Assembly: GCF_035594765.1 (NCBI RefSeq)
Contig: NC_085846.1
Span: 14,247,190-14,311,189 of the forward strand
Direction: 5' to 3'
DNA length: 64,000 nucleotides
Origin: Anolis carolinensis
Lineage: Eukaryota
In this document: positions 1 through 64,000 of the stretch, in pieces
Layout: the number at the start of each line of letters is the position of its first letter
Position numbering within the stretch: position 1 is the first letter of the stretch
Translations under genes and position numbers: made by a program
The notes under the pieces: model-generated
What the model saw: the letters and a program-made list of their open reading frames with translations, nothing else
The model's database searches: none
Told to the model about the DNA's origin: nothing

Positions 1-3000
1 GCTTGGGATGTCGAATGGTGGAGGGCTTGGGATATTTGAGGCTGGTGGCTTTTTTGCTTTGGATTCTTCCGACTCCTCATTGCTCTTGGAACTCTCTGAA
101 GCCTCCTCGTCCTCTTTGTCCTCATCTTCTTTCTCCTCGTCCTCTTTGTCTTCATCTTCTTTCTCCTCGTCCTCTTTGTCCTCATCTTCTTTCTCCTCGT
201 CCTCTTTGTCCTCATCTTCTTTCTCCTCTTCTTCTTCTGCCTTTTTCTTACGACGGTAGTACCTATAACCAAAGTGACAGAAATTGTAAATACAGCTTGT
301 CCTTAGAGATACAGAAAAAAGGCTGTCCTTTTTTTTAGCAGCACTCCCCAGGGAGTGGGGAAAAATTGATGGGGGAAATCATGACAAGTGCCTTCAATCT
401 TCACAATGTCTCATCTGTATTATCCACCTTGTAACAACCTCCTAAAGTGAACTCACCAAACCCCACCGCCTATGCCCAGCAAGAGGAAAAATGTCACCAG
501 CACTCCTGCCAGAACGTTAGCCCCTATATAAGAAAAAGAAAAAGGAGAGGAATCATACCTGGTGAAAATTTCAATGGGTACTATGACATAATTGCCTACT
601 TTTAGTACACCCTCTGTCTCAAATTGGTAAGGGCAGTCCCTATTAATCTTCTCTTTCAGCTGCTATTAAAATATTCCAGTTTCCCTCCTCCTCCTTTTCT
701 CTTTTGTCCCTCAGTTTATTTCAGTAGCTGCAAAATGAATTCAAAATGCCAAAGTAGAAGAGTAGAGGCGAAAGCAGAATCTTGCCCCTCCCAGGCAGCT
801 CAGGCAAAAGCAAACTGTTGCCACCTCTCCTGTTCTTTCACATCAATACCTTTTGCCATCTTGGTCATATTCTGTTGTTACTTGTCCCCATGTGTCCAAT
901 TTTCCATCTGTGAAATTTTGGAAGGTATGCTTAAATATTTCATTTCTTAGAAAGGTTAATGAAAACTCCTTTGAAGTTGTCAAGTCTTCAACAATATTCG
1001 CTTTTTTAAAGTGCTTACATAGCATACACTGGATCGCTTTGCAAGAACCAGATACTCTCCTTGTGAGTGATTTGTGACTATGCTAACAAGAACTTCTTGA
1101 ATACTGTGTCTTAAAGAATTTAAGATTGTTAATGGTGAACCTCATTGGTTCACTTAAATTATCGAGGCAAGAGAGTAAATTATTCCAAAGAAGAAAGGTA
1201 TAATTCTAGCTTAGGGTCTTGGATGCAGTTTTTAATTTCAGTGGCAGTTGGTAACTATGATGTAAATGGGAAAATGAATCTCCTTCAGGATTTAGTTTTT
1301 ACTTTAAAAAGGCTTTGCTAGTGTGGAAATGTATCCCTCAAATCGGCTTTGAAGAGCGGGTGCACAGAAAGATGAAAGTATGTTACGTTTGAAGGAGGGA
1401 TGGAGAGGCGGGGAAGAAGGAGAAAAGACACTTACCTGCACATACTACAGGGTCATTGCAAAAAACGTTGCTAACCTGGCAGTCAATGCAGTGAGCCACT
1501 TCATAGGGCCGAAAGCGAGACTTGGCTATGGAAATGTCAGAAAAAGGTTTGATCCAATCGTGAAATGGTTCAAACATTAAATAAAATTGTCATCGATTTA
1601 GATGAATGACAAACCATGGTTTGCGACTTCTGAACCAAACTAAATGGTTCTCCAACAATCTGAAGAAACAGTCTGGAATATGTTTGTGAATCATGGCTTG
1701 GTCAAGTTGTGGTTTGGTACCCCCATATGAATCAACAACCTTAGTCTAAGACATCTGGTTCAGAAGCTATTGCTTCTCAAGGAAGGTGAGTAAAGGAGGA
1801 AACAACACCTATCATGATTTTCTAGCATATCTGATTCAAAACCTCAAGTATGATTGGTTAGCACAAACCACAGTTTGTTATTACATCTGAAGCAACTCAA
1901 CCTACTGACACAAAGCTGTTATGAGTTGGATCCAGACTTTAGCAAACCCATTAAGTTGGAGCTAGGCCTAGATTTACTAAGAAAAGTCTTACGAAAATTA
2001 ACAGGACTCAAGGGAGTCAAATTTGAATCCCATTGTTTTCAGTATGTCTTTATGAAGTATGATTATGTTTGGATCCAATCCTTTATAGTGTAAGTTTATA
2101 GAGTCATGAGTTTCTTCATTTTGACTGGACACTAATGTGGTTTAGAATTGTCAACATATGCATGGATGTCTAAACAAGATCATCTTCATTCATTTCTAGT
2201 TTGTTTGGAATTATGTCTCCATCTGTACAACTCTGTATCCATAATCCTATGCTCTCCACATTGATGTCAGAGGAGCCAATATGAGACAGAAAGAGAGTAC
2301 AAATGTTCTTTTGACAACTACAAATGCACATTAATTTTCAGATGAGCTGTTCTCTTTTCAAGATTGGAGGATGTTTATCAGATTTTATCTCATGTCGTTT
2401 CACAGATCCTCAGCCTCTTTCTTATTGCCATCAGCCACCTTCATCATCTTTTGAAGTGGCAGCTGCATCACTCCATCCATCTCTCAGAACCTTGGTCTCT
2501 TCATCCTTGCATCTCATTAATTTGCTACTTGTGTTGTGTATGAGTCACAAGGCTGAGAGAGACTGAGGATCTGAGAGACAGACAAACTGTCTCTCAAACT
2601 GCAGCCACCATCTCAAATGTGGAAGTGTGTAGCTGGTGGCAAAAAATTAGGTTGTTTGAAAGTTGTATTCAGAACATTTTTGATTTAGGCCCTACTTGGG
2701 GCATTCTTAAGAACAGTAGTCCAAAAAGTAACATTTACAAGTTATGCCTATATTTTGCCAGTGTTGTGACTCCAAACAACAGGGAAGGGAATGGGTCTAG
2801 TTTGGAGAAGGGTAGAAAAATTGGTACCTCCTATCTAACATTTAGAATTCACATCACCCTTGACACTCACATATGCAGCTAAGCAAGCAAATTAAAAATG
2901 TACCCCAACGGACACCGACACATGTATGCACCCCAGGCAACAGATGGCCAGACAGAGGCACATCTGGTTTAGACAGATTGACTCACCGCAGGAAAGGCCG

Positions 3001-5832
3001 CAGACTGTGAGGGTTAAAACAGGAGGAGGTAGAGAAAAAAAGAACAAATTAGGAGAATCAGCAAATGGAATTTTCTCCAACACAATACTTGCAAAGCCTA
3101 TCCAGGCTTCCATTGCCCAATCCTACCCAACACAACAAAGTACGTTTTCCTTTGTTATGCTTCCATTACATTCTTATGGCTGATCTATATTCAGTATATA
3201 GTCCCAAGACTATTGAAGCCATCACTTTTTATTCTGAGCTCGGGATGAAGACAACAAAAGACGGGAGTTAGGATACTCTGGATCTAGTCTTCAACAGACT
3301 GTCAAATTTACTGGATGATGTCAAATTACACATTTTGTCTCAACCTGGCCAACCTCACAGGATTGTTGTGAAGATAAAGTGAGCGGAGTATAGAACCACC
3401 ACGTCCTCATTGGAAGAAAGGTGGAATATAGGTGAAACAAACTACCAAACCCCACATTAATAAATCCACCTTTATTCTCTGGAAGAACTGGCTGCATTTT
3501 CACAGCCACCTGAAGTGGAGTAAAAAAATCATAAATAGGCCTTGAAAGGGCATTAGTGAAAAGTTAACCATTCTGCCCACACACAAGTGTTGCTTTTGAG
3601 GATGTATCTACATGTAGAATAAATGCAGTTTGATATTACTTGGAGTCATAAGTTGTAGTTTTGCAAGGTTTTTAGCCTTATCTGCCAAATAGTGCTGATG
3701 CCTACAACTCCCGTGATTTTAGAGTCTAGTTTTTTCTCACTTTTCACAACAAATGGCAACAAGTAAAATGACTTAAAGCAAAGAATATCCGACTACCTCT
3801 GAACTCAGCATTAGCTGTGGAATATAACCATCCAACTATAGATGGTCCTAAATTCAATTGCTGGCATTTTTAGACAGGACTAAAAATCTTCATGAGAAAT
3901 GCTGTCTTGAGATAAAACAGCAATGTCAAAGTGCAAGTACTCAAAGCTAATCAAATTATTTCAGAACATAAAACAAACTTCCACAAGCTTCTTTCCTTGT
4001 TTTGTCATTAAATCAATCACTTAAAAGGTACTGCCCTTCCATGGCACCCAATATCTGGTGCCTGAGTTTGCTCTGTAATATCACAAACAGTCACTGTTGG
4101 CCAATGCAGACAGCAGTAATATAGATACTCAGCATAAAATATCTTCCTATGTATCTGGATCATTCATCAACACAAACTGAGGAATTTAGGATGGAATGGC
4201 ACTTACGTTGCTTCATAAAGGCATTGGATGCCTCTTCCAATTTCTTGACAAAGTTCTTTTTTTCCTCCTCTGCTGCACCTATCACATGTTCTGTGGGATT
4301 TAAAAAATGCACCGAAAAAGAGCAAAATACTTTATTGGACTAAAACTTCTATGATCTTTCAGCTAGTGGGATTGTGGGAGCTCTGGTCCCCCAGAATAAT
4401 TTCCAAGCTCTGAGTAATGAAGAAAAGATAATGCCTGGGTGAGATTTAGGAGCCAGATACTTTTATAGTTATGGCAAAAGTGCCACGATTGGTATTGAGT
4501 AGGAACTATGAATATGAACCTGGTATGGAAGTTTATGTCTAAGTTACGCATCTCTAATTGTGATCGTGATTTCCAGCTATTGTTGTTATAGAATAGGATT
4601 TATTGTGGACCTTCAAGTCATTTCCAACTTATGACGATCCTAAGGAAAACCTATCACACTTTTTTGCAAGTTTTATTCAGAAAAGGGTTGCCTTTGCTTT
4701 CTTCTGAAATTGAGAGAATGTGACTTGCTCAAATTCATCCAGATTATCACTTGACAAATGTATCAGAAATTATTATGGTGCAAGAAGATATTTTGATAGC
4801 AAGCGCAGCTGCCATCTAAGAATGTTTTCTCTGTCCAAAATAGCATCATTTCCTACCTTTTCCTCTTGTCGAAATAATATTTTCAATCCGACGAAAGAGT
4901 TGCCCAGCTTCACGCTCCATGTGATCTCGTTCTGCATAAATAAGGGCAGATAACACAAAAGTTGAGGCGCAGAGTTCCTGACCAAACCCTCCTTTTGGAA
5001 CATCATCTCCCGCTTTGAAGAAGACACTAGGAATAGTTTGACATATTGTTGTCATATTTATTTTAGACTTCTGTGCTTCCTGGAGATGACATAAATTGTA
5101 ATCCAATGCAACCAGCAGGTACCAGATCAGGGAAAGATGGTGTTTCAGAATTTAGAAAGTTATTGTTGAAGGTATTTATTTACAAGCTTGGTTCCCCACA
5201 AAATATTTATCATTGTTCTGTAGTTACATTTTTACAGTAAAGAGTTCTGATGGAAAGATACATGACCCATAGCTTCCAATCTATCTCTGAAATCAAGATC
5301 ACTAGCAATGCCTTTCCTAGCATCTCAAAAGATGTCGTGTGGCCTTTCTCTTCCATTATTTCTATGTTGAGTTGGTCAAAATGCAGCCTGTAAGCTCAAT
5401 GCAATCCCAGTACCAGCAGTCATTTTTGGCCCCTTCGAGAGGGGCATTTTTGCCATGTTTCTGGTGTCTTGGGTGACAAAATGCCATAGAGGGCATCAGG
5501 GGACAAACAACATTGAAGAAATGGCATTAAGGGAGATTGTAGTATATTGTACTGGATTGTTGCAAGGAGTGTGCCTAACACTCCTTTGTGGTCCCGTAGA
5601 CTCAAACCATTGCCCCGTCCTCATTTATACCCAAATATCTTCTGCCATTGGAAGTAGTGTCGCCCAGGAAGATGTTCACCAGGCTCCGAGCGGCTTCTGA
5701 ATCCTGACCAAGCAGCAGATTGGCATCGTAGCCAAAGCTCACTACAGCATCTGGCCAGCAGCGGAGACATGTGCCAGCCAACTGCATGGGCAGAGTCCAG
5801 GCCAGCAATCCTATCAGAGGTCCTTTAGCCAT
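1..5832 (-). CDS. TEX51: TEX51-like single-pass Izumo-domain sperm membrane protein; complement(join(<1..262,457..523,1436..1525,2987..3004,4207..4290,4857..4931,5631..5832)); 3' end outside the window
   Basis: GT-AG exons with matching phases splice to MAKGPLIGLLAWTLPMQLAGTCLRCWPDAVVSFGYDANLLLG...RRYL/ERDHMEREAGQLFRRIENIISTRGK/EHVIGAAEEEKKNFVKKLEEASNAFMKQ/LCGLSC/AKSRFRPYEVAHCIDCQVSNVFCNDPVVCA/GANVLAGVLVTFFLLLGIGGGVW/YYRRKKKAEEEEEKEDEDKEDEE... The motifs CLRCWP..YD, RDHxExE and CxDC..CNDPxxC match human TEX51 as recalled. An in-frame upstream ATG exists at 5889. Confidence 0.8.
103..229 (-). repeat. Coding tandem repeat, 4 copies plus a partial copy of a 30-bp unit encoding KEDEDKEDEE
   Basis: Unit ctcctcgtcctctttgtcctcatcttcttt repeated from 103 with a single substitution, inside the last exon of the TEX51-like gene. 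Confidence 0.9.
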
Positions 5833-6101
5833 GAAAAGCAGAACGAAAAGGCTAGAGCCAAACACTGCTTTGAGGAAGAACAGAAGCATGGAAGATCAAT
5901 AGGAACCTGGCATCAGTTCAGTGTTCCAGCTTCTACATAGCTGACATCACTTTGTGTTCTAGATCTAGCATCATAGAGACTCACACCACCATTTGCCTAT
6001 ACACTCGCTCTCCTTGGCAACCTTTTCTGACTGATCTCCTTGCTTTAAGAGAGGTTGTTTTTGCCATTGCGGCATTTGGTCCTGATTTTGGGGCTGCTTC
6101 C
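5833..6101. promoter_or_regulatory. Putative bidirectional promoter between TEX51-like and IZUMO3, with a CRE-like TGACATCA at 5942-5949
   Basis: Divergent start codons at 5832 (or 5889) and 6102; the CRE variant lies between them. Confidence 0.6.
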
Positions 6102-9100
6102 ATGGTGCCTTGGTTCCTATCAGTTTTCCTTCTGTTTCTGCTCTCCTTCAAAGCAGCATCTGGTTGTCTGCAATGTGACCGCCGCTTCTTGGATTCTGCA
6201 GCCACCGTCATGAAGGAAACATTGCCTGGAGACGTACCTGACCGTGAAATGCTTATTGAACGGCATGTTGAGGCCTTGTCAAATATTCATGGCACTTACC
6301 TCCGACAGAAATACGAAAGAGTGCTGGGTGCGACCTGAACAGAGATGCATCACTGGGGCTGGGAAAGCAGAGGAAAAGTGTAACATAATCAGAGTTTGGG
6401 AAAGTTACCTTTGGGGACTGTAGCTCCCAGAATGCCACAAACAAAGTGGCTGGTGTCCATGCTCACTGGAGGATCCTGGGAGCTGCAGCACCACAGTAAT
6501 TTTCCAAGCTCTGGCTTTAGCATCAGACATGTAGAGTTAAATCTGTGGATGTCTTCTTTTAGATGTACGTGGAGTGAAGGCTATTAAATCAGATATTATC
6601 AGTCGTCTGCGAGAGATAAAGGCCGGCACGTGGAAAGGTATGTTGGGAAGCTGGTGCATGTGGGATTTTCCCACTGAGATTGGATTGTGGGGAACTCTTA
6701 GCTTCATACAGTAAGTTTTCGTGTGGATACCATAAAGGTATTCTCCTAAATGTAGCATTCTCTTAGCTGTCTTGAACTACAGACCCAATTATCCTCATCA
6801 ACCCTGGCTGAAAATGAGAGCCAGCATATTTCAAGCTTGCCCTTCTTAAAAGTTGCAACAACACTAATAGCTTTCATCCTTTTGAACAAACTCTAATGTT
6901 TGGATACACATGTCCCAGTTTTCATCTCTGAAATGTTGGCAAGTACGTCCTCACTCCCTCTGCTTTGCTTTAGCTCCTTTTCCCTTCTTTCCACTTAGGG
7001 GTTTTCTTGTGGCAACTCTCCTTGTACGAGATTAGAACCTCCCTGCGACAGCGCATGCAACGGATGCTGGAGAAATTCGCCGACCTTGGTACCAATCGTG
7101 CAGGGAAGGGCAGACCCACCAGGGCCCAACTCCTTATAATCATTTGCTGTGTTTCCCAAACTCTGGTCTTCCAGGTGTGTTGGACATCCCTGATAATTAG
7201 CCAAGGCAGCTGAGGCTTCTGGGAGTTGAAGTCCAAAACATGGAGGACTAGAGCTTGTGAATCACTGAACTGATGGGGATTCCCTATATGTCAAGGGTTT
7301 GGTGACGCGTGTTGTTGAGCCAGGGCTACAACCTGTGATGCACCATGGGTTTCTTTTTCTAAAATGAATATGATAGCTAGGAAAGACAGACAAACAGAAA
7401 ATACAGTAGTCTCTCACTTATCCAACACTCGCTTATCCAACGTTCTGGATTATCCAACGCATTTTTTTAGTCAATGTTTTCAATATATCATGATATTTTG
7501 GTGCTAGATTCGTAAATACAGTAATTACTACGTAGCATTACTGCGTATTGAACTACTTTTTCTGCCAGATTTGTTGTCTAACATGTTTTGGTGCTTAATT
7601 TGTAAAATCATAACCTAATTTGATGTTTAATAGGCTTCTCTTTAATCTCTCCTTATTATCCAACATATTCGCTTATCCAATGTTCTGCCGGCCCGTTTAT
7701 GTTGGATAAGTGAGACTCTACTGTATACAGAAAAATAAGAAATACACAAGCAACGGCTAGAATCCTGTTGATGTCTTACATACATCTGAGTTCTGTGGTG
7801 AAAAGAGCTAGACATTGTTGACCAGTTGGAAATATCCATTCTATCCAAATTTGTGGCCCCAAAGTTGCACATAAGTTCCATTGTGTACGCATTTCAACAT
7901 ACAGATGCACACTGTAAATGCCAGTAGGAATTTTACATGCAGATGAGCATGTGCTTTCCTTGTGCAACATCACAATTCACTCACAAGGTGGCATTCTGCA
8001 ACCACCAAGTCACTCTCAGCATAAAGCTGTCCCACATTTCATCTGGGAAACATTAGAGGGTGTAATTAGTTTTATGACTATGAATTGTTGATTAACTAAC
8101 ATAAAACCATGAATTGTATAAGAACGAAGCAAGAATTCCTGCAAAATTATGATCCTAATCCAATCTTTTCTCTTCTCTTCCCACAATTCAGCTTGTTCAG
8201 AGGACTGTAGTAAGTATTGTGTCCCCCTTTCCCCTCCCCATTCCAAACACTTCTCTGAACCCTTCCAAGTTTTTTTAACCAGCCAGTCCCTGAAATCTTC
8301 TGTGTCTGAAATGTATGACACCCCAAGAGCTTTGGGTTCTTAGCCGTGATGTTCTTCCTTTTGGCAGCTGTGACTGAAGGTCCCATTTTGGACTGCTGGA
8401 CATGCTTACGGATTCTTGCCCAATGTTATGATGGAGAGCTCTGTGGAGGTATGCCATAGAAAAGTATGGTACCTAATATATGGCAGGACTTGGTACTGAG
8501 TTTGTGTGTGCATATACGTGCCTTCAAATCACCTTTTAATTGATAGCCCCAGGAATTTTGTAGGGTTTTCTTTGGCAAAGTATACTCAGATGTGGTTTGC
8601 TATTGCCGTCTTCTAAAATAATAGCATACAGAAACTGGTGTTCCTTGGTGATCTCCCATTCAGGCTTGACCATGCTTAGCTTCCAAGATCTGAAACTCTC
8701 TGTTAACTTCAGGTATTTATGTGGACACATTGGTAGTTTGGTAATACAGTATTCTGTTTCTTGTCTCAATTCCCAAAGCAATACAAGATGTTAATATGGT
8801 GTTCCTTTTGCTTCTTAGTGGAAGACAAACGTCTTGCAGAATACAATGAAGTTGTTCTTTACGTGTTCCTCGTTTGTGAGTCTGTGGTGTTGACCTCAAC
8901 TCTGCTTATGTGAGTAACTTGCTCCGCCATGTCCCTCCAGCCTCCTATGAAATTCGGGAATTCAAACTGAGGTTTTTGTTGATCTTCTTGTATCTCTTTG
9001 TAATTCTTTCCCAAAACCCCATTGATGGGAATTACTCTGTATACTCATGTATAAATCTTGAATTTTTAGTCAAAAATCAACCCCCAAAACCTGGGTTAAC

Positions 9101-9806
9101 CTACCCACAGGTCGATGTGTGTACTCTACCTCAATTCTTATCAGAGAATGTACCATTCTATTATCTGAGTGGTGTGGCGGAAGGCAAGAGCTTAATCCAC
9201 CCCAAAAGAAAGTAAAAGAAGCACCGATCCTCTCTACTCTCCCCACCGTAGAGCATCTTCTTGCTTTTTTAAATGTCTGGGTGGAGAAATAGTTGCAGTG
9301 GCAGCCAAGGGCAGCGGCCCCCTGAAATGACATTGGTTTTTCCCCTCTCTATGGAATGACCCTCAACGTATCTGTGGATCATATCAAGTTCCATAATTTT
9401 TTCCACAAAACCTTCTCTCGAGTTATACATGAGGTTGGGTTATACATGAGTATAAACAGTATGTGGTCCACCATATGTTATTGGACGGCAGGTCCCAGCA
9501 ATGACAGTCAAATGTGAAGGAAATGTTGGGAGTTGTAGTTTCACAACTTCTGGACAACTACTTACTACCTTGTAGCCCTATTTGGATTCATCAGGCTATG
9601 GCTGGAGAATGCTGAGATGGTAGAAAGACAACTAAGGGCCTTAAGGACGAGCTTAAAACTTTTCTCAATGAAGGACCATGTTTAGATGAGGCCTGATTTG
9701 TGTTCTAGAAGATGAAGGAACCTCTCCCCTTCCTAACTGTACCTCCAGATACATGGTGTGCATAAAACACACGAGGACAAGTCTGCAGAAAGCTTTGGCC
9801 CGTTAG
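6102..9806 (+). CDS. IZUMO3: Izumo sperm-egg fusion protein 3; join(6102..6327,6563..6637,6999..7088,8192..8209,8368..8448,8819..8909,9749..9806); 212 aa
   Basis: The 639-nt spliced ORF reads signal peptide, [119 protein letters not shown]..stop. TWKGVF, ACSEDC and [12 protein letters not shown] match human IZUMO3 as recalled. AATAAA at 9883-9888. Confidence 0.92.
7404..7723. mobile_element. Tc1/mariner(Tigger)-type MITE, family A. Other copies: 12185-12500, 12921-13242, 16339-16661, 22934-23211, 25368-25517, 26948-27374, 35798-36139
   Basis: TIR CAGTAGAGTCTCACTTATCCAAC...GTTGGATAAGTGAGACTCTACTG, TA target duplication and near-identical interiors. Confidence 0.85.
9037..9459. mobile_element. 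Older Tc1/mariner-type non-autonomous element; a related degraded copy lies at about 53200-53610
   Basis: Imperfect TIR ctgtatactcatgtataa / ttatacatgagtataaacag with a flanking TA. Confidence 0.5.
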
Positions 9807-10281
9807 CTGTGTTGGAATCCAGAAGATTTCCCAACGCTGCACCACCTTCCAACATATCCTTCACCTTTGAACACTCAGAACAAATAAAAGGACATTTCTC
9901 TAAGGAAGAAGGTTTCTGTCTTCAACAGAGGAAAGCCAATTTGGAATCTCATTTGGTTCCCTGGGATGGGAGCGATGCCTCGTGAATTAGTCATGAAGAC
10001 AAGAAGGGTGCTGGCTGTCAAACACCTGAAGGAGATAGGAGAATGCCATTCAAGATCTCTGTAGACCAAAACAAAAATAGAAAAGGCACAAAACTAGGTT
10101 TTGTATTTATTTTGGAAAATTAAGAGATTTGAAAAAAGACAGGGTTCGCGTTGTTTGGGTCAGAAAAAGATTTTGAGTTCAAAGGTTGTCTGGATACTTT
10201 GGAATCTTTTCCAGAAGACATCCTTTGTGGGTGAGAATACAGTGGGTCTTTCAACTAAACACGTTCAGGCAGGACTTCCAA

Positions 10282-13200
10282 CTAAATATATTGAAATAGC
10301 CAGTTCCTCCAGTAGACGATAATCCTGGAGAGAAGGGAGAGTTAGTGTCCCTCTGCCATCCTCCCTAAATCTTAGCCTTTAATGTGGCGACAAATTTATT
10401 TGAGATGGAGAGCTTGGTTGTTGGTGATACTCACGAGAATAACATCACCAGAAAGAGCACTGCACCCATACACAGAACAATGGCGACTCCAGTTCGGGCA
10501 ATATTGGGGTCCTTCAGGGGCTGTCCATAACGGAGGGACAGGCGTTCCTCGAAATCAACTGCAAGGGGAGAAGTTCCAGATTTGGTATTTGGATGGAAAC
10601 AGCAATTTCTAGTCTCTTCTTTCTACCACTTGAGCTCATACCCCAAGCAACTTAGAGGGCCCTTCCACACAGCTATATAACTCAGAATATCAAGGCATAT
10701 AATCCACAATATCTGCTTTGAACTTGATTATCTGTGTCCACACTGCCATATAATCTAGTTCAATGTGGATTTTATTCAGCTGTGTGAAAGGGGCCAGAGA
10801 CACTCCAGATTAGATTCCCAACACTTGGGGTCTGGTTCCTCTTCATTGGCCCTACGGAAGGAGGGGGACTCTCAGGAAAAGGACACGGCCTTGAAAAGCA
10901 TGTGTCTGCATGACTATAAATACCTCACATTTATGTGTTTCATTCTTATATGATACACTATCAAGAGCTGCACTTTTTGTAACATCACGAAGGCCTGAAA
11001 TATCACATTTGCTTGTCTCTAGGGGCGTATCTACACTGTAGAATCAATAATTTGACACCCCCTTCACTCAATGCTATGGAATTGCAGGAGCTTCTTGATC
11101 TTTATTTTAAAAAACCCATCTATGTCAGTCCTTCTCTTTGGCTTGGACAATACGAGCTCTTTGCTGACATTGCTGTGATTGGCCAACTTTGTTTTTTAAT
11201 TGCTTTCATGTTGGAGGACATAAATCCAGCAAGTCTTGAGCGAGGCACGCCATGATACTAATCTCCTCCTCTGCTGCATGCAGCCTCGTGCCTTCTGTCA
11301 CACGCCTGCTGTCCACCCACCACCTCATATTTCCAGCAGGACTTACCAAAGCACTGGCCTATAGTCATGCAGTAAGCCGCAGTCGCATGGCATCCTTTGC
11401 AATTCATCACTTGATAGTTGAGTGTGCCTGAAACCGGGGCAGGCCAGGAATAGGATGGAGGAAGGAAATATAGGTCACACCAGCCATAGAATAATCCCAG
11501 TCATATAAACACTGGCAGAGCCTATTCCCAAAACTCGTCCCACGGATTTACACAATTCCTAAGACAAAGGGAAGATTCTTTATACTTCTGAGATGTTTCA
11601 TGACATGATTCCATCTTAGGAATCCTGGGATTTGCAGTTTAGGAAGGGACCTTTAGAATCCTCAGCGAAAGAGTATTCCATAGGACATTGCCATGCAGCT
11701 AAAGGGGAAGGATACTGCTATAATTGTTTGTAGGAATTGTAATTGTTGGAAACTTTCTGAATGATACCCCCTCCCCGCGAAACATGGCTATAATGATATT
11801 TTGGGAGTTGTAGACCAAAATAATTATTTTTCTTAGATACTTTGGAGACAGCAGTGATTCGTTTTTTCTAGAGACACTCAGCCATTGACAATGCAAATGG
11901 GATTTCTCAGCTCACTACAGTTTGCTCCTTTGAATTCCTCCCCAACCACATCCCATGCACTCATAACAATAGCTTTTATTTGCCAGATCCCCCTCAAATA
12001 TTCTGCTTCAAATATTCTGAAAGTAGATTAAGTAAACTTACCACATATTTTTTTATTACAAGCTGTGAAGAATGAGAATCTGACATTAGTATACCATGGC
12101 AAAAAGATCCATTGTCCACAAGTCTATTTTCGCATCTCTCTCCACTCCCCTTCAATTCTAGAATCATGTGCTTGTATATACATACAGTAGAGTCTCACTT
12201 ATCCAACACTCGCTTATCCAACGTTCTGGATTATCCAACACATTTTTGTAGTCAATGTTTTCAATACATCGTGATATTTTGGTGCTAAATTCGTAAATAC
12301 AGTAATTAATACATAGCATTGCTGCGTATTGAACTACTTTTTCTGTCAAATTTGTTGTTAAACATGATGTTTTGGTGCTTAATTTGTAAAATCATAACCT
12401 AATTTGATGTTTAATAGGCATTTCCTTAATGCCTCCTTATTATCCAACATATTCGCTTATTCTGCCAGCCCGTTTCTGTTGGATAAGTGAGACTCTACTG
12501 TATAAAGGAGCCGCAGTGGCACACTGGGTTAAACCCTTGTGCCAGATGAACTGCTGACCTGAAGGTTGGGTTGCTGACCTGAAGGTGGCCGGTAGAAATC
12601 CGTGAGACAGGGTGAGCTCCCATCTGTCAGCTCTAGCTTGCGGGGACATGAGAGAAGCCTCCCAGCTATCACATCTGGGCATCCCTTGGGCAACGTCAGG
12701 AGAGAATGCTTCTGGAAAATGGCCATACAGCCAGGAAAACTCACAGCAACCCAATATTTTCACTGTTAAAGGTGGGAGGTGGGAAGTCTATTTTGATCTT
12801 GGATTATCATTTTTATTATTGCTTTTCAATAGGGCAGGTGGGGGAAACTAGTTTAAATGGATATGCATAGCGCTGTAAGTCATAGAGGGGAAAATTATTG
12901 TCTATATCAATTGTACAATACAGTAGAGTCTCACTTATCCAACACTAGCTTATCCAACGTTCTGGATTATCCAACGCATTTTTGTAGTCAATGTTTTCAA
13001 TACATCATGATATTTTGGTGCTAAATTCGTAAATACAGTAATTACTAGATAGCATTACTGTGTATTCAACTACGTTTTCTGTCTAATTTGTTGTATAACA
13101 TGATGTTTTGGTGCTTAATTTGTAAAATCATAACCTAATTTGATGTTTAATAGGCTTTCCTTAATGCCTCCTTATTATCCAACATATTCGCTTATCCAAC

Positions 13201-16065
13201 ATTCTGCCGGCCCATTTATTTTGGATAAGTGAGACTCTACTGTAATACTTATATTGCTAGAAAAAATAATAGTTTTTTTTAAAAAAAAGGCTATTTTCTG
13301 CCTTGAGCACTCAGTCCTCAAAAGGCCTGCCGAAATACAAAGGTCTCCAATTATGGGACTTAGAGAGAACCCAATACCTTTCACCTGGTGTTCTTTTAAT
13401 GCCCGCTTCAGCTTCAGGGTGGTAGCCTTCCGGAAAGCGACCAGTTTTTCCAGCAGATCCTCATCTGGGAACAGAATGAGAAGATGCGTGGCTGGGGAGA
13501 GGTCCCCTGCAAGGTTGGTTCAGGAACCAAAAGAGACTTCCTGGCAAAATAGCATATTGGTTAGACCAGGGCAAACTTGGGCCCTCCAGGTGTTTTGGAC
13601 TTCAACTCCCACCATTCCTGGCCTCAGGCCCTTTCCTTTTCCCCCTCAGCCGCTTAAGCGGCTGAGGGGGGAAAGGAAGGGGCCTGAGGCCAGGAATGGT
13701 GGGAGTTGAAGTCCAAAACACCTGGAGGGCCCAAGTTTGCCCATGCCTGGGAGAGACAGCTTGGGAACAATCCCAATATAAAGGCACTTTAGGAAAGGAG
13801 GAGTTAATATCCTCACCTGTAAGTGTTGTTTTAAGGAGTTCTGCAGTGGTGGCTCTCACCTCCACGATCAAGTCGTCAACTTTTCTCTTAACTAGGAAGA
13901 ACACAAAGATGCCCCTTACCCAAATTATATAAAGAAAGCACACTGCACCTCTGAGTATATGACAGAAGACGAGAGTCTGCAACAAATAATGGCACATTGC
14001 ACTTTCCCAGTTTAATTTGATATTTTTTTAAAATCATATAATGGAGTGGTTAGAAGGTTCAATTAAGAACGTGGAAGCCCAAGTTCTAGTTCCTACCAAA
14101 ACATGAACTAAATGTTCTTCAGCTAGTTCTCCTCCCTGCCAGTCCATAATTGTCAGTCCAGAGGTTTTATGGGTCAACCCTGAGACCTAGGGTTGGCCCC
14201 TATTTAATGTCATGTAGTGAAACACATTACTGATGGCATTAAGTGAAATGTATCACCGGAAGAACATATTTTCCGGTTTGGAAATTAAGACAGAAATCTG
14301 TTCAAAGTGAGGTGATAATTCCTTCTCACTGACATGGGAAAATAGGACAAGGAATTGTTAACCCATCCCTTTTGTGTCTATCCCAGAGGTAAATGCAGAG
14401 CGGAGTGGAAGGTGAATCCTGGCACTGTAGTGACTGATAGGGAACTTTTTTTCATGAGAAACTGGTGTGAGAGAACTGGCTGTCTGCAAGGACGTTGCCC
14501 AGGGAACGCCCGGATGTTTTGATGTTTTTACCATTCTTGTGAGAGGCTTCTCTCATGTTGCCGCATGGAGCTGGAGCTGATAGAGGGAGCTCATCCCCAC
14601 TCTCCCCAGGTTGGATTCAAACCGGCAACTTTCAGGTCAGCAACCCAACCTTTAAGTCATCAGTCCTTCCAGCACAAGGGTTTAACCCGCTGCACCATCG
14701 GGGGCTCCCATAGGGGACTGAAAACCTAACAAAGTCGATATCTAGATTCTCCTTAGAATCCGATGAAACTTTGGAAAGTGTACCAAACTCTTGCACTCCC
14801 AAGTCCTTGCTGCTTGTCTGGACCTAAATGGGAAAATGTGCACCTTCGCCTGAAGATGGACCTTGAAAACTGGAAACTCAGGATCTGGGATCTGGCAACA
14901 TTACTCTGTCTGCTTGGCTATAAGTATACAGTAGAGAGGAAGAAATGTCATTGGAGGAAAAGTGTGATATAAGTAGAATCAATAAAATGCCATGCAGTTC
15001 AATGTAGTTAAACTTCATTATATGAGTCTGTACCAGGCATGGGCAAACTTTGTCCCTCCAGGTGTTTTGGACTCCAACTCCCACCATTCCTAACAGCCTC
15101 AGGCCCCTTCGCTTAAGCGGCTGAGAGGGAAAAGGAAAGGGCCTGAGGCTGTTAGGAATGGTGGGAGTTGGAGTCCAAAACATCCGGAGGGACAAAGTTT
15201 GCTCATGCCAGGTCTATACTGATAGAGCCTTTAAGCAGAGGAAAGGTTTATGAAATAAGGAGTGTTTCATACCTGTGGGAAGACAGAAATCTTGCTGACA
15301 TTGTCAGTTAGTTACCTTTTAATTATGATCCTTTCTATTGTCTAAAAAGTTTGTAAATTGCCTTAAGTCACAATATTGGAGAAAGTCGGGGCATTCATCT
15401 CCAGCAGTAATAAGTATTTATCCCCCCCCCCCCTTTTTTAAATACTAACTTCTGTCAAAGTGCCTTAAAAAAACTCCTGTGCTGATGTGGTCTAAAAGTG
15501 GATTTAATTTTTAAAATGTGCTGAGAACCACCCTTTCACTAAGTTAATTACATGGCTCAAGCAGGATGAAGATGTCATGAGTTAGTGATGTCTCAAGCAC
15601 GAGCTAATAACTATCCGTATAATTCTTGCATGAATTGATGAATTTCACTTTGCAATTCACAAAGTACATTAAAGAAACGTTACCACATCTTCTCAGCAGT
15701 GAGATGGGAGAAAGATACACGTTGGGGACACAAAGCGTGAATTCTTCACACCGTCACAACATATCCACCGAAGCAACCCCAAAGTTTTGATTCTAATTTC
15801 TGACCACGCAAAATGGAGCCAAGGCCATACCGGCAAGGCCAGGAAACTGGTTGTTGGCGTAGTTGTAGAAAAAGTTTTTTTCAAGGTCTTCGAGGAGAAC
15901 TTCAGCCCGTCCCTTGATGCGGGTGTCATGGATCTGACGCGGCACGACTATCGTCCGGAGTTTTTCCACATTTTCCTTGAACTGTTCATCACATTGCAAG
16001 CAGCCCAAGGCAGCTGTGGGCAAACAGAGCAGAGACAACACAAATGGAAGACCTGAATCAAGCAT
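10282..16065 (-). CDS. IZUMO2: Izumo sperm-egg fusion protein 2; complement(join(10282..10324,10435..10558,11347..11427,12042..12062,13378..13464,13817..13891,15831..16065)); 221 aa
   Basis: The 666-nt spliced ORF reads MLDSGLPFVLSLLCLPTAALGCLQCDEQF..RAEVLLEDLEKNFFYNYANNQFPGLA/VKRKVDD../DEDLLEKLVAFR..HQVK/ACNKKIC/GTLNYQVMNCKGC..C..QCF/VDFEERLSLRY..TM helix/IIVYWRNWLFQYI. It aligns with human IZUMO2 (FFRDYA, DEPLLEELV, ACNPKLC, CFVD) and is head-to-head with the myosin gene as IZUMO2/MYH14 are in human. Minus-strand AATAAA at 10106-10111. Confidence 0.92.
13567..13749. mobile_element. Fully palindromic hAT MITE. Other copies: 15034-15211, 27814-27943, 33153-33935 (interrupted), 35283-35413, 46151-46284, 51771-51964, 57014-57207; half copies near 22580, 37775 and 44102
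   Basis: CAGGCATGGGCAAA...TTTGCCCATGCCTG ends; the longer copies fold about CCGCTTAAGCGG. 8-bp TSDs include gtgtagag (46143/46285) and atgtatag (33145/33936). Confidence 0.85.
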
Positions 16066-18004
16066 GGCGCAAGCCAAGAAAGTTGCTCTTTCGAGGTTCT
16101 GTAGGAAATGACATCATAATGGAGGGTGTTGCATTATTCTCAGCACAGAAATTGAGAAAGTTCTTTTATGGGATTTTGCCTCTCAGGACCCATCTACACT
16201 GCCATATCACACAGTTTCAGAATGTAGATTAACTGCATTGGACTGGACAGTATGGCAATGTAGGCCTCTTCTACATTGCCATATAATCCAGATGATCTAA
16301 TCAGATAATCCACATTATTTTATTATTTATTTACTGTACAGTAGAGTCTCACTTATCCAACACTCGCTTATCCAACGTTCTGGATTATCCAACACATTTT
16401 TGTAGTCAATGTTTTCAATACATTGTGATATTTTGGTGCTAAATTTGTAAATACAGTAATTACTACTTAGCATTACTGCGTATTGAACTACTTTTTCTGT
16501 CAAATTTGTTGTATAACATGATGTTTTGATGCTTAATTTGTAAAATCATAACCTAATTTGATGTTCAATAGGCTTTTCCTTAATGCTTCCTTATTATCCA
16601 ACATATTCGCTTATCCAACATTCTGCCAGCCTGTTTATGTTGGATAAGTGAGACTCTACTGTATTTATATTCCACCCTTCTCACACCAAAGGAGACTCAG
16701 GGCGGATCACAATGCACATATACATGGCAAATATTCAATGCCATTAGACATATGACATATAGACAGACACAGAGGCAACATTTTCCAGCTTCATGAGGGT
16801 ATACTCGTTTCCAGCCACAGGGGGAGCTGCCGCTTCATCGTCCACTTGTGACACCGAGTCCTTGATGGAGTACTTCCTCATTCCTTTCCGCACGCTGCTG
16901 GAAGTTTTTACAGTGTTGTAAATTAGTTAAATTAGCCTCCCTGCATAAAGCAGTACTTAAATTTTCTACTCGACAGATGCAACTGTCTTTTGAGCTGCTT
17001 AGGTCAACAGCAAGCTAGGCTATTAAATGGTCAGGAACTCAATCCGACCCGGGCTTCGATCTCATGACTTCTCGGTCAGTAGTGATTTATTGGAGCAGGC
17101 AACTAACCATCTGCGCCACAGCCCAGCCCTTCCTTGTACTGGATTATCTAAATCTATACTACCACAATCTAGTTCAAATCACATAATCTGGATTTTGTAT
17201 GACAGTGTAGAAGGGGCCATAAATTCATATAATCCAGTTCAACACAGTTCAATCTGCATTATATGAGTCTAAGCTGACCATATAATGCAGTTCAAATAGT
17301 GTTATAAGGTCATGTAGATGAGACCTCAAGCTCTTCTCAAGTTTTGGTAAAGTTTGATGTTTCGAAGTGATGGTAAATTTGTGGCCTCCTACATTTTGTT
17401 ACCTCCACTTTTTCCATATTCAGTGCCATGCTAGTTGTATCTGTTGGGAATTTTAGTCCCACAATAATTCACAAATTGTCCAGACTTTTGGAGCTAAGCA
17501 TCTGTGAACATGAACACCAGATTTATTGTCACCGATCCTTGTTTAAGCTCATGGATCACACAAAATGCCCAATAAGAAGGCTGTGTGTAATTACATGATC
17601 ATATTCCAGAGACATACACATTATGATTAGGTTTCATTACTTATAAAGCATTTTAAAAATGTATTAAATATGTATTTATTCCAAGTGGTTTACAGATCAA
17701 GACAACAGATAGATGGATGGTTAGAAAAAAAGAAAATTGCACTTTCAATCTTACAATCTAAAAGACGTTATATGAAAGGAAAATGTAGGGAGGAAGCACA
17801 GTAAAGCAGCTGCCATGGACAACAGGCATGTGGTGCTATGGAAAGTAAAAAATATTCATTATTAATATTTTTAGCCTGAACAAAACCACTGTTCAGGTGG
17901 GCAAGAATTAATCTTGAGTATAAGAGCAAATGGCAATGTTTTCAAACACAAATACTACAGTTTTGTGAGAACAGAAGCATCAGCCTAAGTATTAGGTCTC
18001 TTTG

Positions 18005-20205
18005 TTATTTCTCGGAGTTCTGGTTCATGTGATTCTCTGGGGCTGTAGGTGGAAATAGCTGAGCCAAGCCTGGCACGGTTCGGAAGAGGTGGGAGGTGGC
18101 ATCACCGGCATCCCTTTGGCGCAGGTAGCACAGAAAAGCTGTCCACACAAAGGAGCAGGCGCCCACGTAAGTTGTGCGGAACATGGGTGGCACAAGAGCA
18201 AAATTCACTGCCTGGTGAAAAGGAGAGAGATGACAAGCTGGAACATTAACATTTTGGTTGAAGTGGATTTTCCAGTATGATGCCTCTTCTCATCTCAGAC
18301 TGGCTGGGACATACCTAGAGTTTGGAAACATGATTGCCTTGGGAGAACAGCTCCTCCACCTAGCATAGTCAACCCAAAGTTCCTTCTGTACTTCCTTCTG
18401 AAACTGGTTTTTCTAGGTCAACCTAGACTGGGATGCTGGTGAGGTTTGGAGATGTTCTAAATCTAGTTGAAGAAGTCATGACTTTCCAGATGTCATTAGA
18501 CTCCATTGAAGCCCAGGTGGCGCAATGGGTTAAACTCTTGTGCCGACAGGACTGCTGACCAACAGGTTGGCAGTTTGAATCCGGGGAGAGTGGGTGAGCT
18601 CCCTCTGTTAGCTCCAGCTCCCCATGCAGGGACATGAGAGAAGCTTCCCACAAGGATGGTAAAACATTAAACATCCAAGCTTCCCCTGGGCAACGTCCTT
18701 GCAGACAGCCAATTCTCTCACACCAAAAGCGACTTGTTGTTTCTCAAGTTGCTCCTGACACAAATAAAAATGGACTCCAACTCCCATTAGTTCGAGATAC
18801 CATGACCAGTAGTTGGGCAGAGTGGGAGTTGTAGTCCTGCTGTTTTTGGAGAACTAATGGGTCCTCCAGAAGCTGCAATAAACTGAATTTAAAATGGAGA
18901 AGTATGTTTGACACCATAGCTGTTTAAAGGCACTGAATCCATCATTTCCTTCTCTGCATTCAAAAACCTATTAACTCCATATTTCAGGTAGTGGGACTAG
19001 AAAAGGAAAGTGAAATCAGAAACACTTACCTGGAACAAAGTCCAGCACAACACCCCAGCCTGAAGGAAGAGGAAGCAAAAATAAAAAATGGAGCATCCAG
19101 ACTAAGTGTCAAAGTCCCTAACAAGATCTCTCTTTAAGCACTGAAAATTTTGGACCAGTGGTTCTCAAGATGTGGGATCCCAGATGTTTTGGCTTCAACT
19201 CCCAGAAATCCTAACAGCTGCGATTTCTGGCTGGCATTTCTGGGAGTTGTTGGCCAAAACACCTGGGGACCCACAGATTGAGAACCATTATTTTAGACAG
19301 ATGATCCCCCTCCTGAATAATACTATGGTTAACTTTTGGTAAAAGCATATCATAGAATTCTGCTGGAGGACCTAGTAAATACCTAGAGAGAAAATTGTAT
19401 TGGCCATTTAAACAAATTCATGGGTACAAGTTCCATTGGTATGTTAGTTTTTCTGTATAATATTTAATATTTATTGATGGTAATTGAATAATATAAATGT
19501 TATATGTTAACATTTTTATTTCATATTTAATAGCAGCATCTATCACGGCATCATCAATACAATATTCCATCAGGAATCCAGAAATCACAGAGCTGTGATG
19601 AAAAATCTCACCCTGTTTCTAATGTGGGGAAAACACAATAAAAGTCTCACACAAAGCAGGCATAATTTTTATCCCATAGTTTCTATGACTCTCAGTTTTG
19701 CAGGGTTATGAAAATTAATATACAACACATTACCTTGTAAGATGACCAGAATTTTTCCCGCAAATTCCCGAAGATGTCACGTTCACCATCCAGAAGAGAG
19801 AGGCCTGGAAAACACAGAAAACTGGTCTCCAAACCATGTCACCATATTTGGAAGACACCCTTCTCACCTGTACCTTCTCTCACCTGTGTAAAATGCCCCA
19901 ATGGTGATTGGGGCGGCTATGGCCTGGTCACATGCCACCTTTACAATCACCTTGGAAACATTTGCTCCTGGAAGAAGACGTTCCAAGGCCCGGAACCAGA
20001 CATAATTGAAGTTGGCGTGGAAAGTGAACCCTACCAGCGCCACTTTGGCCGTCTGCTTCAGGTCCAAAGCAGTGCACCAAAGCTGGTCCTGATGGGCCCT
20101 TGACAATACCTGCTGGACCACATCGGCTGCAGAAAACAGAGTCCCATAGGCAGCAACATTCAGCACCCAAGGATGGCGATGCACCAGGCTGCGCAAAGGG
20201 CGCAT
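18005..20205 (-). CDS. Mpv17-like protein (Mpv17/PMP22 family, MPV17L-type); complement(join(18005..18211,19030..19059,19734..19804,19884..20205)); 209 aa
   Basis: The 630-nt spliced ORF reads HPWVLNVAAYGTLFSAADVVQQ..DLKQTAKVALVGFTFHANFNYVWFRALERLLPG..KVACDQAIAAPITIGAFYTG/LSLLDGERDIFGNLREKFWSSYK/AGVLCWTLFQ/AVNFALVPPMFRTTYVGACSFVWTAFLCYL. FHANFNYVW and the 71-nt and 30-nt internal exons are MPV17L-type. A strong acceptor at about 20294 implies upstream non-coding exon(s). Confidence 0.9.
18512..18762 (+). mobile_element. tRNA-derived Anolis SINE2-type element. Other copies: 12507-12697 (+, truncated), 14455-14708 (-), 36528-36800 (+), 47540-47785 (-)
   Basis: A-box tggcgcaatgg, B-box gtttgaatcc and the shared body gagagaagcctcccacaaggatgg...gggcaacgtccttgcagac...ctcctgaca. 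Confidence 0.75.
19156..19288. mobile_element. Second hAT-type palindromic MITE family; copies also at about 55478-55610 and 63332-63467
   Basis: CAGTGGTTCTCAA...TTGAGAACCACTG type termini. Confidence 0.7.
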
Positions 20206-50716: not shown

Positions 50717-51367
50717 TAATAATAATAATATTTATTTATATTCCGCTTTATTTTCCCGAAGGGACTCAGAGCGAATTACAGTACACATAAAAGGCAAACA
50801 TTCAGTACCTTTTACACAACAATGACATGCAATACATGTACACAAACAAAGGTAAAGACCTTTGCCTTTCATCTCCTGTGTCTGGAGGTGATGCTCAACT
50901 CCAACCATGGAGAGGTGCTCTTGTTCCATTTTCCATGCTGAGGAGCCTGTTGTCCGTAGACATCTCCAATTGTGTTTTGCCGGCATGTCTGCCCTTTTAC
51001 CTTCCGCCGAGGCGATCCCTATTGATAATAATAATAATAATAATAACTTTATTTTTATACCCCGCCCCATCTCCCCGAAGGGACTCGGGGCGGCTTACAT
51101 GGGGCCTTGCCCGATAAAACAATCAAATATCAAAACACAGCAATATTGATCTACTTGCATTGCATGTCTTCGAACTGCTAGGTTGGCAGAAGCTAGGGCT
51201 TACAGTCAGGAGCTCACCCCGACTTGCGGCTTCAAACTGCCAACCAGCAGATTTCCTGCAGCTAGCGGTTTAACCCTATGGCAGAGTGTAGGTGTAGGAC
51301 CGTTGTAGAACTCAGTCCCAAGAATGATAACCTGTCTAAACTTTTCCTTTCCGTTTCTTTCCCAGCC

Positions 51368-61302
<9,935 letters not shown>

Positions 61303-63801
61303 TAAAGTTAATTTAAAACTCCCATAATCTCCCAGCCATCACTCATGCTGTCTGGGAGTGTTATGGGAGTTGTCATCATGAAAGTAATCTCTCCCACTAC
61401 AATGCCTACTCACATGAGCAGAACAGAAGTCTTGAAAGCACATAATTTTTAATTTCAAATGGACCAGCCAGTCTCCAATCCTATGTTTTCATATTTCTGA
61501 ATAGGAGCTCTCCCCCTCCCTCTCTCTCATCCACATCATGCCAATGAAGTGAGATCCCATTGGAGCACAGCAGCTTCCCAACATCCACGGTTCAGTTTTG
61601 AGTCAGGGTTTACCTGGAAGGTGTCCTAAATGCAAATGCTCAGCTTTGGAATGTGTTGAAGTAGCGATAAAGGGAAGTGCTGCTTAAGCACTTGCAGAGT
61701 GCTTTTCCTTCCTCAGTCGCTTTCCACACCCAGTCTGTGCTTCTTTGGAATTTGGATGCCACATTTCTGGTGGGTGGCATCTAAGTAGGAAGGAGTGCCA
61801 GCATACTTCCCCCGTATCCAATTACCTTTTTGCCCATACTAGTCACTCCCCCACACTTGTATGCCACTGTTCACTCTGTTCTTCCCATCTTCCCCGTGTG
61901 CCTCTTGGTCTCTGTATTCTTTTTTGTGTTTGCCTCCCTCACAGTCATTATAGTTCTGTTGTAGCACCTTTACAGGTTGCTTTCCAAATGCTTCTCAAGG
62001 CCCTTTCACATTACATTGTTTAGTTATAGCGTAACCGTTTCACTTTTACTGCCACTTCTCAGATCATGGTGGATCCCATATTTTTCAGGGTCTGTAAACA
62101 CATTGGATGGAAATCTTTCAGGAATGCTTAATTTATATCCCAGCATGGCATATTGTGATGGCCCTTGTGATCCCCTCAATCAGATTCTGTGATTTTCAGG
62201 CAAAGAACTCGGTTGTCTTGCCAAACCACAATCCTGGAAATGCAGCTATTTTGTTGTTAAAGTGGAATCATAGTGCTGTAATTATGTTGTGTGAAAGGAC
62301 CCTCATTATTACGAAAGCAGCACATTATCCTATACCTCCAAAGAAAGGATAGTATCCCATACACCCTAAGAAAGACCTGATATAAAGAATACGGTTTTCA
62401 CAATTTCCCAGCTACCAGGAGTGGAGCCCAAGTAATCAAATTGCCAATCGCTGGAGATTATTGTCTTCTGGTTGGGGGATTTGGGGAGTCATAGTAAAAA
62501 AAGTCATCTTTCCAGGCTCTGATGATAGGGGATTCAGGTAGCTGCAATCCTTCTAATGCAGTGTGAGCTGTGGCTAGTTGTGTCAGGAGAAAACTCTTCT
62601 CTTTATCCAAAAGTTATGAAATTTACCAACCCTACCACCTCCCCTTCATGTTGGCCATGTCTTAGTTGGAAGGTGTGCAGAATAGAGGTTAATTCCCAAA
62701 CATCCAAAAATGCAGACCACCAGGTTTGTATCTGTATAAAATTTATTTTGTCAAACCTAAAGACCTTGAGCAGACTTCTCTGAACAATGTCTCCTAGATG
62801 TATTAGTTAGGCTATCACTTCTGTCATTTTTGAGCCAGCAACAGAGCCAGTTGGTGAAGGGGAAAGAGGCCGCTGGAAACTACAGTAGTTGAACTGTTCT
62901 CCATTCTAGATCTGATATGTTCTTCCATTGCCTATTACAAGCTGCTATAGTTAATGAATTGCTATCATTAAGCTTAGCAATAATAATAATTATACTATGG
63001 TCACATCACCATTCAGGACTCCTCCCAGAACAACAGAGGCCAAAACCTCTGTCTGTGGGAGGGAAATGCAAAGCAAGGATTCTCTCTGTTTGGTTGTGAT
63101 GTGTTTGAGCACTCAGTGAAAACTGAGACCCCCCATTTACATACACTGCTATACAATGCAGTTTTAAATTACAGTATATGGCAGTGTAGATGGGGCTTCA
63201 GATTCAGGCACTTGGTTGTTCTGATTTTTGAGAAACTGAGTCTGAGCCCCAGTGCCCCAAACCTACTTTTCTGGACTGCAGCCCTCTTAATTCTCTAGGT
63301 AATTAATACCAGTGGCTACAATGGCGTAGTACAGTGGTTCTCAATCTGTGGGTCCCCAGATGTTTTTGTCCTACAACTCCCAAAAATCCCAGCCAGTTTA
63401 CCAGCTATTCGGATTTCTGGGAGTTGAAGGCCAAAACATCTGGGGGCCCACAGGTTGAGAACCACTGGCATAGGAATTCTGGAAGACATCGTCCAAAGAA
63501 GTAACCATTTCTCCAAGCTCTGCCAAAGCCACTCATGCAGTTTCCTTGGCAAAGTTTGTGTTTCACCCCTGAGCCTTGGGCCCTCTCCATCAAAGCACAG
63601 TTCTCTGCAGTGCTTCTTTTCTGCAATCTGGGTCACACCGAGACCACACTGCTTGTTGGAAGATATTATTTGAATTTTTGTGTCCAAACAAAATGGTTTT
63701 GGGGTCTTGTCTCTGACAGTGTTTGTGTGTGGGAGGGTGTTCTCCTGGGTCGTCGAGGGGAGCTGGTATTAATCCCCCCCTCTGTTGTCTTACTGCCCCA
63801 G

Positions 63802-63828
63802 CCGGAGTACCCGACCGAAGCCAAACAG
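63802..63828 (+). CDS. Candidate alternatively spliced loop-1 insert microexon of the myosin gene (PEYPTEAKQ)
   Basis: Pyrimidine-rich acceptor ..tgtcttactgccccag, 27 nt in phase 0, donor CAG|GCAAGA (GC type) and TGCATG at 63844-63849. It resembles the MYH10 B1 insert PESPKPVKHQ and follows the exon ending DHNIP. Confidence 0.55.
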
Positions 63829-64000
63829 GCAAGAGAGAGCACTTGCATGTTGCCACAATGCCAATCCCCCCCTATCCCTGCACAGCCCCATCCTCCTCCT
63901 CCCCGTCCATCCTCCAGGGCTGACTGCTGGTCACTTACATTGGCTGCTGCTCTTGCCTCCTTTTGGGGGCTCTAACTCTGGCTTAAAAGCTTTGATTGTT

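Follow-up and report, generated by a model that had tools for sequence, protein, structure and literature searches.

A stretch of Anolis carolinensis DNA of 64,000 nucleotides (hereafter the window), which contains no N, harbors at its left end three intact seven-exon genes, at <1-5832, 6102-9806 and 10282-16065. These genes (A, B and C, respectively) encode TEX51, IZUMO3 and IZUMO2 and lie on the minus, plus and minus strands. Such a cluster within ~16 kb had been proposed in a reading of the sequence alone, and the three spliced ORFs and their matches to database proteins bear it out. The last exon of gene A extends 101 nt beyond the left edge of the window, which makes the cluster a little longer than 1-16065. 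The features are:

1..5832, minus strand: gene A, TEX51; coding exons 5832-5631, 4931-4857, 4290-4207, 3004-2987, 1525-1436, 523-457 (TM) and 262-<1; from spliced contigs, homologues and the NCBI call
5833..6101, no strand assigned: candidate common divergent promoter region, with the two start codons 269 bp apart; from contig ends and start codons
5944..6025, no strand assigned: conserved non-coding core with a CRE-like element, two other blocks of conservation and, near 6010-6021, a half site resembling an RFX X-box
6102..9806, plus strand: gene B, IZUMO3, 212 aa; coding exons 6102-6327, 6563-6637, 6999-7088, 8192-8209, 8368-8448, 8819-8909 (TM) and 9749-9806; AATAAA at 9883; agrees with the NCBI call and orthologues
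10282..16065, minus strand: gene C, IZUMO2, 221 aa; coding exons 16065-15831, 13891-13817, 13464-13378, 12062-12042, 11427-11347, 10558-10435 (TM) and 10324-10282; poly(A) signal near 10106; agrees with the NCBI call and orthologues
18005..20205, minus strand: flanking MPV17/PMP22-family gene, a synteny marker outside the cluster, between IZUMO2 and the myosin gene
51317..64000, plus strand: 5' part of a flanking non-muscle myosin II heavy chain gene, MYH14 from its position; among solved structures, MYH10 matches best

All three spliced ORFs have GT-AG introns and zero internal stops, and the NCBI gene calls (318, 212 and 221 aa for A, B and C, respectively) have the same ends as our models. 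Five junctions of gene A and its 18-nt microexon are present in contigs of two runs, each from a different study, and these spliced contigs set the TM exon at 457-523; guessed positions for this exon 6 (559-613 or 851-908) were discarded. An upstream ATG at 5889 is in frame with gene A, and the homologues begin at the Met of 5832. The models of genes A and C coincide with database proteins P0028 (100% over 183 unmasked aligned residues) and P0046 (221/221, named IZUMO2 of Anolis carolinensis). Genes A and B are arranged head-to-head, and genes B and C tail-to-tail with separate poly(A) signals ~220 bp apart; the arrangement is thus inverted rather than a head-to-tail tandem. A short inverted-repeat transposon is present in or near the cluster in four almost identical copies (7405-7710, 12185-12500, 12920-13240 and 16340-16660).

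The three genes share one skeleton. Their intron phases are 1,1,1,1,1,2, exon 2 has 75 nt in each of them, and a microexon of 18-21 nt with two cysteines is found in all three (2987-3004, 8192-8209 and 12042-12062). As had been noticed from the sequence, the proteins consist of a signal peptide, an Izumo domain and one TM helix and have no Ig domain; the Izumo domain has eight cysteines, with two CXXC motifs, in ~145 aa, at a spacing of 3/97-109/4-5/10-13/3/7/6. Signal peptides and TM helices were identified by hydropathy for genes B and C, and the TM exon of gene A by the spliced contigs and by reading the sequence. The proteins are predicted to be type I membrane proteins with a four-helix bundle, a hairpin and a TM helix. 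The chance of finding three consecutive genes out of 7-10 family members among 20,000 genes is near 1e-6. Linkage, intron phases and the microexon are genomic evidence that TEX51 is a true paralogue of IZUMO3 and IZUMO2. Several database isoforms (P0012, P0027, P0075 and P0076) lack the microexon, through either alternative splicing or faulty annotation.

A profile built from the first exons of all three genes retrieved 18 proteins, and from these squamate proteins named TEX51 and IZUMO2 were reached, as were IZUMO3 proteins, including those of six mammals. The profile links were E 6e-12 for B-C, E 1e-5 for A-C, and weak for A-B (E 0.015). Gene B is 64-71% identical to full-length squamate IZUMO3, 34-42% to mammalian IZUMO3 and 23% to gene C. 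The Pfam IZUMO domain is recognized in its single exons (23.3 and 24.3 bits) and in its gecko orthologue (105.6 bits). Gene B is orthologous to mammalian IZUMO3, with E-values down to 1e-55 in the local set and identical internal exon sizes (75/90/18/81/91 nt in both shrew and anole). Gene C, which has a full-length Pfam IZUMO match of 82.5 bits, above the cut-off, is mostly 55-73% identical to squamate IZUMO2; in a comparison without mammalian IZUMO2 it groups with a turtle IZUMO2 fragment, and its position fits that of mouse Izumo2. A divergent IZUMO3-like first exon was also found on a Logan contig (L001 1-443), with two CRE-like octamers just upstream; this contig and a second one (L008) do not reach far enough to include neighboring genes.

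Gene A is 15-21% identical to its two neighbors, and BLAST searches with B or C do not detect it. Its identity to squamate TEX51 is 53-66%, and NCBI gives the name TEX51 to eight of its squamate homologues. The Pfam IZUMO model (PF15005) has no hit in gene A, and its homologues score 13.7-16.2 bits, under the cut-off of 25; this model is present in only 12% of the TEX51 cluster of the Atlas. Among Atlas structures the nearest to gene A is the TEX51 cluster, followed by SPACA6, while by language-model features the IZUMO3 cluster ranks first (0.94), with TEX51 at 0.90-0.91 and the TMEM95 and IZUMO2 clusters also found. A nematode cluster of unnamed 197-aa proteins reaches 0.88-0.89 to TEX51 by the same features, level with TMEM95, and is a lead only. 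The structure model of gene A from an alignment seeded with IZUMO2 and IZUMO3 (pLDDT 66) has four helices and two strands forming a hairpin. Its matches to SPACA6 (Z 7.5) and IZUMO1 (Z 6.8) are weak, rank below unrelated helical proteins and are partly circular given the seeding; these two are the best-ranked solved folds that cover both the helices and the hairpin. Foldseek with a low-confidence model from nine TEX51 sequences only (pLDDT 48) gave no match.

In an unrooted tree, built with no outgroup and without mammalian TEX51 or IZUMO2, gene A falls into one clade with the squamate proteins named TEX51 (support 100/100) on a stem of ~5 changes per site. The IZUMO2 clade, including the turtle fragment, has support 96/100 and a stem of 2.9; IZUMO3 does not form one supported clade, and the path from lizard to mammalian IZUMO3 is ~1 change per site. 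Such long stems, compared with ~1 change between lizard and mammalian IZUMO3, argue against lizard-specific duplicates, an outcome that would have overturned the sequence-only reading. Gene A could still be a fast-evolving inverted duplicate, confined to reptiles, of IZUMO3 or IZUMO2 that received the name TEX51 by similarity, with only the IZUMO2-IZUMO3 pair ancestral. The composition of the tree, the top language-model match and the long tail of the protein speak for this. The cytoplasmic tail of squamate TEX51 has 81-121 aa, first acidic and then proline-repeat (two to five PSPP-type repeats), whereas the human isoforms have 166-203 aa in all (PMC12615630) and lack such a tail. We consider this origin improbable in view of the length of the gene A stem separating it from IZUMO3, its low identity to the neighbors, the nearest structure and the NCBI names; moreover, PSI-BLAST with TEX51 as a query retrieves lizards, snakes and turtles (PMC12615630). 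In the anole, the tail is encoded at 1-262 on the minus strand (residues ~198-318 of P0028), and a 30-bp tandem repeat lies within this region at 103-236.

The corn snake has the trio in the same order and orientation as the anole. In the geckos Heteronotia and Eublepharis, IZUMO3 and IZUMO2 are annotated, and TBLASTN revealed an unannotated TEX51 ~250 bp upstream of IZUMO3 (L002 9750-5326, minus strand, and L007 21663-25802, plus strand, respectively), again in the same order. In addition, the head-to-head TEX51/IZUMO3 pair was found on a Logan contig, and the tail-to-tail IZUMO3/IZUMO2 pair in Thamnophis. Because geckos diverged at or close to the root of the squamate tree, the trio is at least as old as that split. 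The microsynteny proposed as a check thus holds in squamates, and together with the tree it supports old linkage.

The flanks are conserved in part. The MPV17/PMP22-family gene has a 76% identical counterpart at the same place in Eublepharis and none within 10 kb in Thamnophis. The myosin gene had been taken for MYH14, which its position supports and its sequence does not: the first exon is closer to MYH10 (197 bits) than to MYH14 (143 bits), so the name rests on position. In the mouse, the order is Myh14, Izumo2, Zfp473 (PMC12270595); Izumo2 lies beside a non-muscle myosin II gene as in the anole, but Izumo3, Tex51 and an MPV17L-type gene are not listed there, and the other flank in the anole is an epsin-family gene. 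The latter (ENTH domain, DPW and NPF motifs; L006 20692-25991) is located ~4.7 kb past the TEX51 stop. In human, EPN1 likewise maps to 19q13, as does IZUMO2. The chromosomes carrying the trio (120 Mb in the anole and 145 Mb in the garter snake) may be anole 6 and the snake Z; if the latter is true, the trio would be Z-linked in snakes.

The sequence-only reading had IZUMO3 and TEX51 moving away in the mammalian lineage with their introns intact. For IZUMO3 this is shown: in bat and shrew the gene stands by itself, as the 10 kb to its left and right contain no called gene and yielded no paralogue in TBLASTN searches (with squamate TEX51 and IZUMO2 probes of limited sensitivity), and the identity of the shrew internal exons to those of the anole indicates that IZUMO3 moved as DNA. 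Mouse Tex51 is on chromosome 18 (PMC12917576), and its separate departure may be assumed. If all three genes predate the amniote split, their linkage does too, and the breaks occurred on the mammalian side.

The expression of genes A and B appears to be coupled. In the same two runs, X8 and X4 (presumed RNA), the contigs of gene A stop near 5902-5921 and those of gene B start near 6014-6024, leaving a gap of ~100 bp, although contig ends are not equal to start sites. Hence, the 5' ends are divergent and less than 1 kb apart, and both genes are transcribed in the same samples if the runs are indeed RNA, as in a bidirectional pair. The core at 5944-6025 sits in this gap and is the longest anole-snake non-coding match over 16 kb (E 2e-4), the others being 19-28 nt long and repeat-like. 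It contains the CRE-like element TGACATCA at 5942. The three-part core motif has a single occurrence in the whole 64-kb window and a single one per gecko or snake locus in the four named squamates, from whose sequences the pattern was derived. It is absent from the bat and shrew loci, and alignment of the squamate core with the upstream DNA of bat and shrew is unconvincing (shuffle p 0.04-0.55 over four tests); the only core-type feature detected there is a full X-box-like site at -48 of IZUMO3. Co-regulation, suggested earlier as a possibility for all three genes, is thus supported for TEX51 and IZUMO3 only and does not cover IZUMO2. The CRE-like octamer of the core is also found at 16109, ~50 bp upstream of IZUMO2.

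By their consensus, the CRE-like and X-box-like sites are assigned to CREM and RFX2 as the putative factors binding the core. Izumo3 is a predicted Crem target in one mouse single-cell study (PMC13616282). The bidirectional spermatid promoter of PLCZ1 and CAPZA3 (PMC4834118) likewise serves two back-to-back sperm genes, but these are unrelated to each other, while TEX51 and IZUMO3 are ancient paralogues.

Alternatively, the linkage may be ancestral but neutral, preserved by slow rearrangement in reptiles, and the conserved block may belong to a single gene only, as its promoter or 5' UTR. In mammals the genes came apart and none was lost, and neighbors such as the MPV17L-type gene are partly conserved as well. 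On the other hand, the start codons of TEX51 and IZUMO3 are kept ~250-270 bp apart in four squamates while introns change in size and share no sequence, and the core is not part of the transcript contigs of either gene. We regard neutral linkage as rather unlikely; it does not conflict with what the explanation that we prefer says about evolution.

The earlier suggestion that the trio might be fusion genes acting together on reptile sperm is not supported. Two studies describe Tex51 knockout mice: in one, fertility is reduced and the head, the anchoring of the acrosome and the tail are defective (PMC12615630); in the other, the head is malformed but litters are normal (PMC12917576). The loss of Izumo3 is reported, with reference to Inoue 2021, to abolish the attachment of the acrosomal granule (PMC9976968). 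In these mutants sperm are still able to fertilize (PMC12615630, PMC12917576), in contrast to the loss of the gamete-fusion factors IZUMO1, SPACA6 and TMEM95, which blocks sperm-egg fusion. The role of IZUMO2 is listed as unknown (PMC12615630). The knockout phenotypes point to acrosome building as the likely job, and TEX51, IZUMO3 and IZUMO2 most likely work in the assembly and anchoring of the spermatid acrosome rather than in gamete fusion. One complex of the trio that acts when gametes adhere or fuse, possibly owing to the lack of JUNO in reptiles (JUNO is absent outside mammals; PMC4807442), would agree with the IST fold and with a promoter common to two of the three genes. We find it very doubtful, since the knockouts affect sperm shape and the acrosome, the trio has no Ig domain, and IZUMO3 is reported, in a passage citing Ellerman 2009 (PMC3432370), to form homodimers only. 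A narrower scheme, for which we see some, though limited, likelihood, is that TEX51 and IZUMO3 originated together by inverted duplication around a single spermatid promoter and to this day make up one acrosome-anchoring module, perhaps as a heterodimer, in all amniotes; mammals would have split the genes, and mild single knockouts would hide a shared essential role. If so, a double Tex51/Izumo3 knockout, or a triple one with Izumo2, would expose this role.

Taken as a whole, the following account is probable. The Ig-less membrane-anchored IST genes TEX51, IZUMO3 and IZUMO2 would have been born at this locus before the mammal-reptile split, through local duplications of DNA that were accompanied by inversion, and all three would have been retained in squamates. 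In the mammalian line IZUMO2 would have remained next to Myh14, and IZUMO3 and TEX51 would have departed separately by DNA rearrangement. One compact bidirectional promoter, most likely of the spermatid CREM/RFX type and presumably active in testis, would drive squamate TEX51 and IZUMO3 and may help to hold them linked, and the proteins would have a role in the acrosome.

Parts of this arrangement are known. Adjacent Izumo2 and Izumo3 on reptilian contigs, both present in mammals too, were described by Grayson (2015; PMC4807442), the same adjacency as in the anole; the available text of that work names no third gene, TEX51 or promoter. TEX51 was placed in the IST family by fold (four-helix bundle, hairpin, two CXXC motifs, TM and no Ig; Dupuis 2025, PMC12615630; Vance 2022, PMC9482655). 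Gene A shares the two CXXC motifs, the TM helix, the lack of an Ig domain and the presence in squamates, and may share the bundle and hairpin, but differs in its tail, and these papers provide no synteny or exon evidence. RefSeq already annotates TEX51, IZUMO3 and IZUMO2 in several squamates; TEX51-IZUMO3 linkage was not found in the literature searched, which mostly excluded subscription journals and in which a single paper mentions both genes, in passages that are silent on linkage. What is new here, useful if modest, is TEX51 as the third member, head-to-head with IZUMO3, the exon layout common to all three genes and a conserved, putative divergent promoter.

Linkage, intron phases and the microexon give genomic support for TEX51 in the Izumo family, to which it was formerly tied by predicted fold alone. 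The picture of sperm-egg fusion is unchanged by the trio. A common birthplace of TEX51 and IZUMO3 may explain why the Tex51 and Izumo3 knockouts are alike, and double or triple knockouts may reveal any redundancy.
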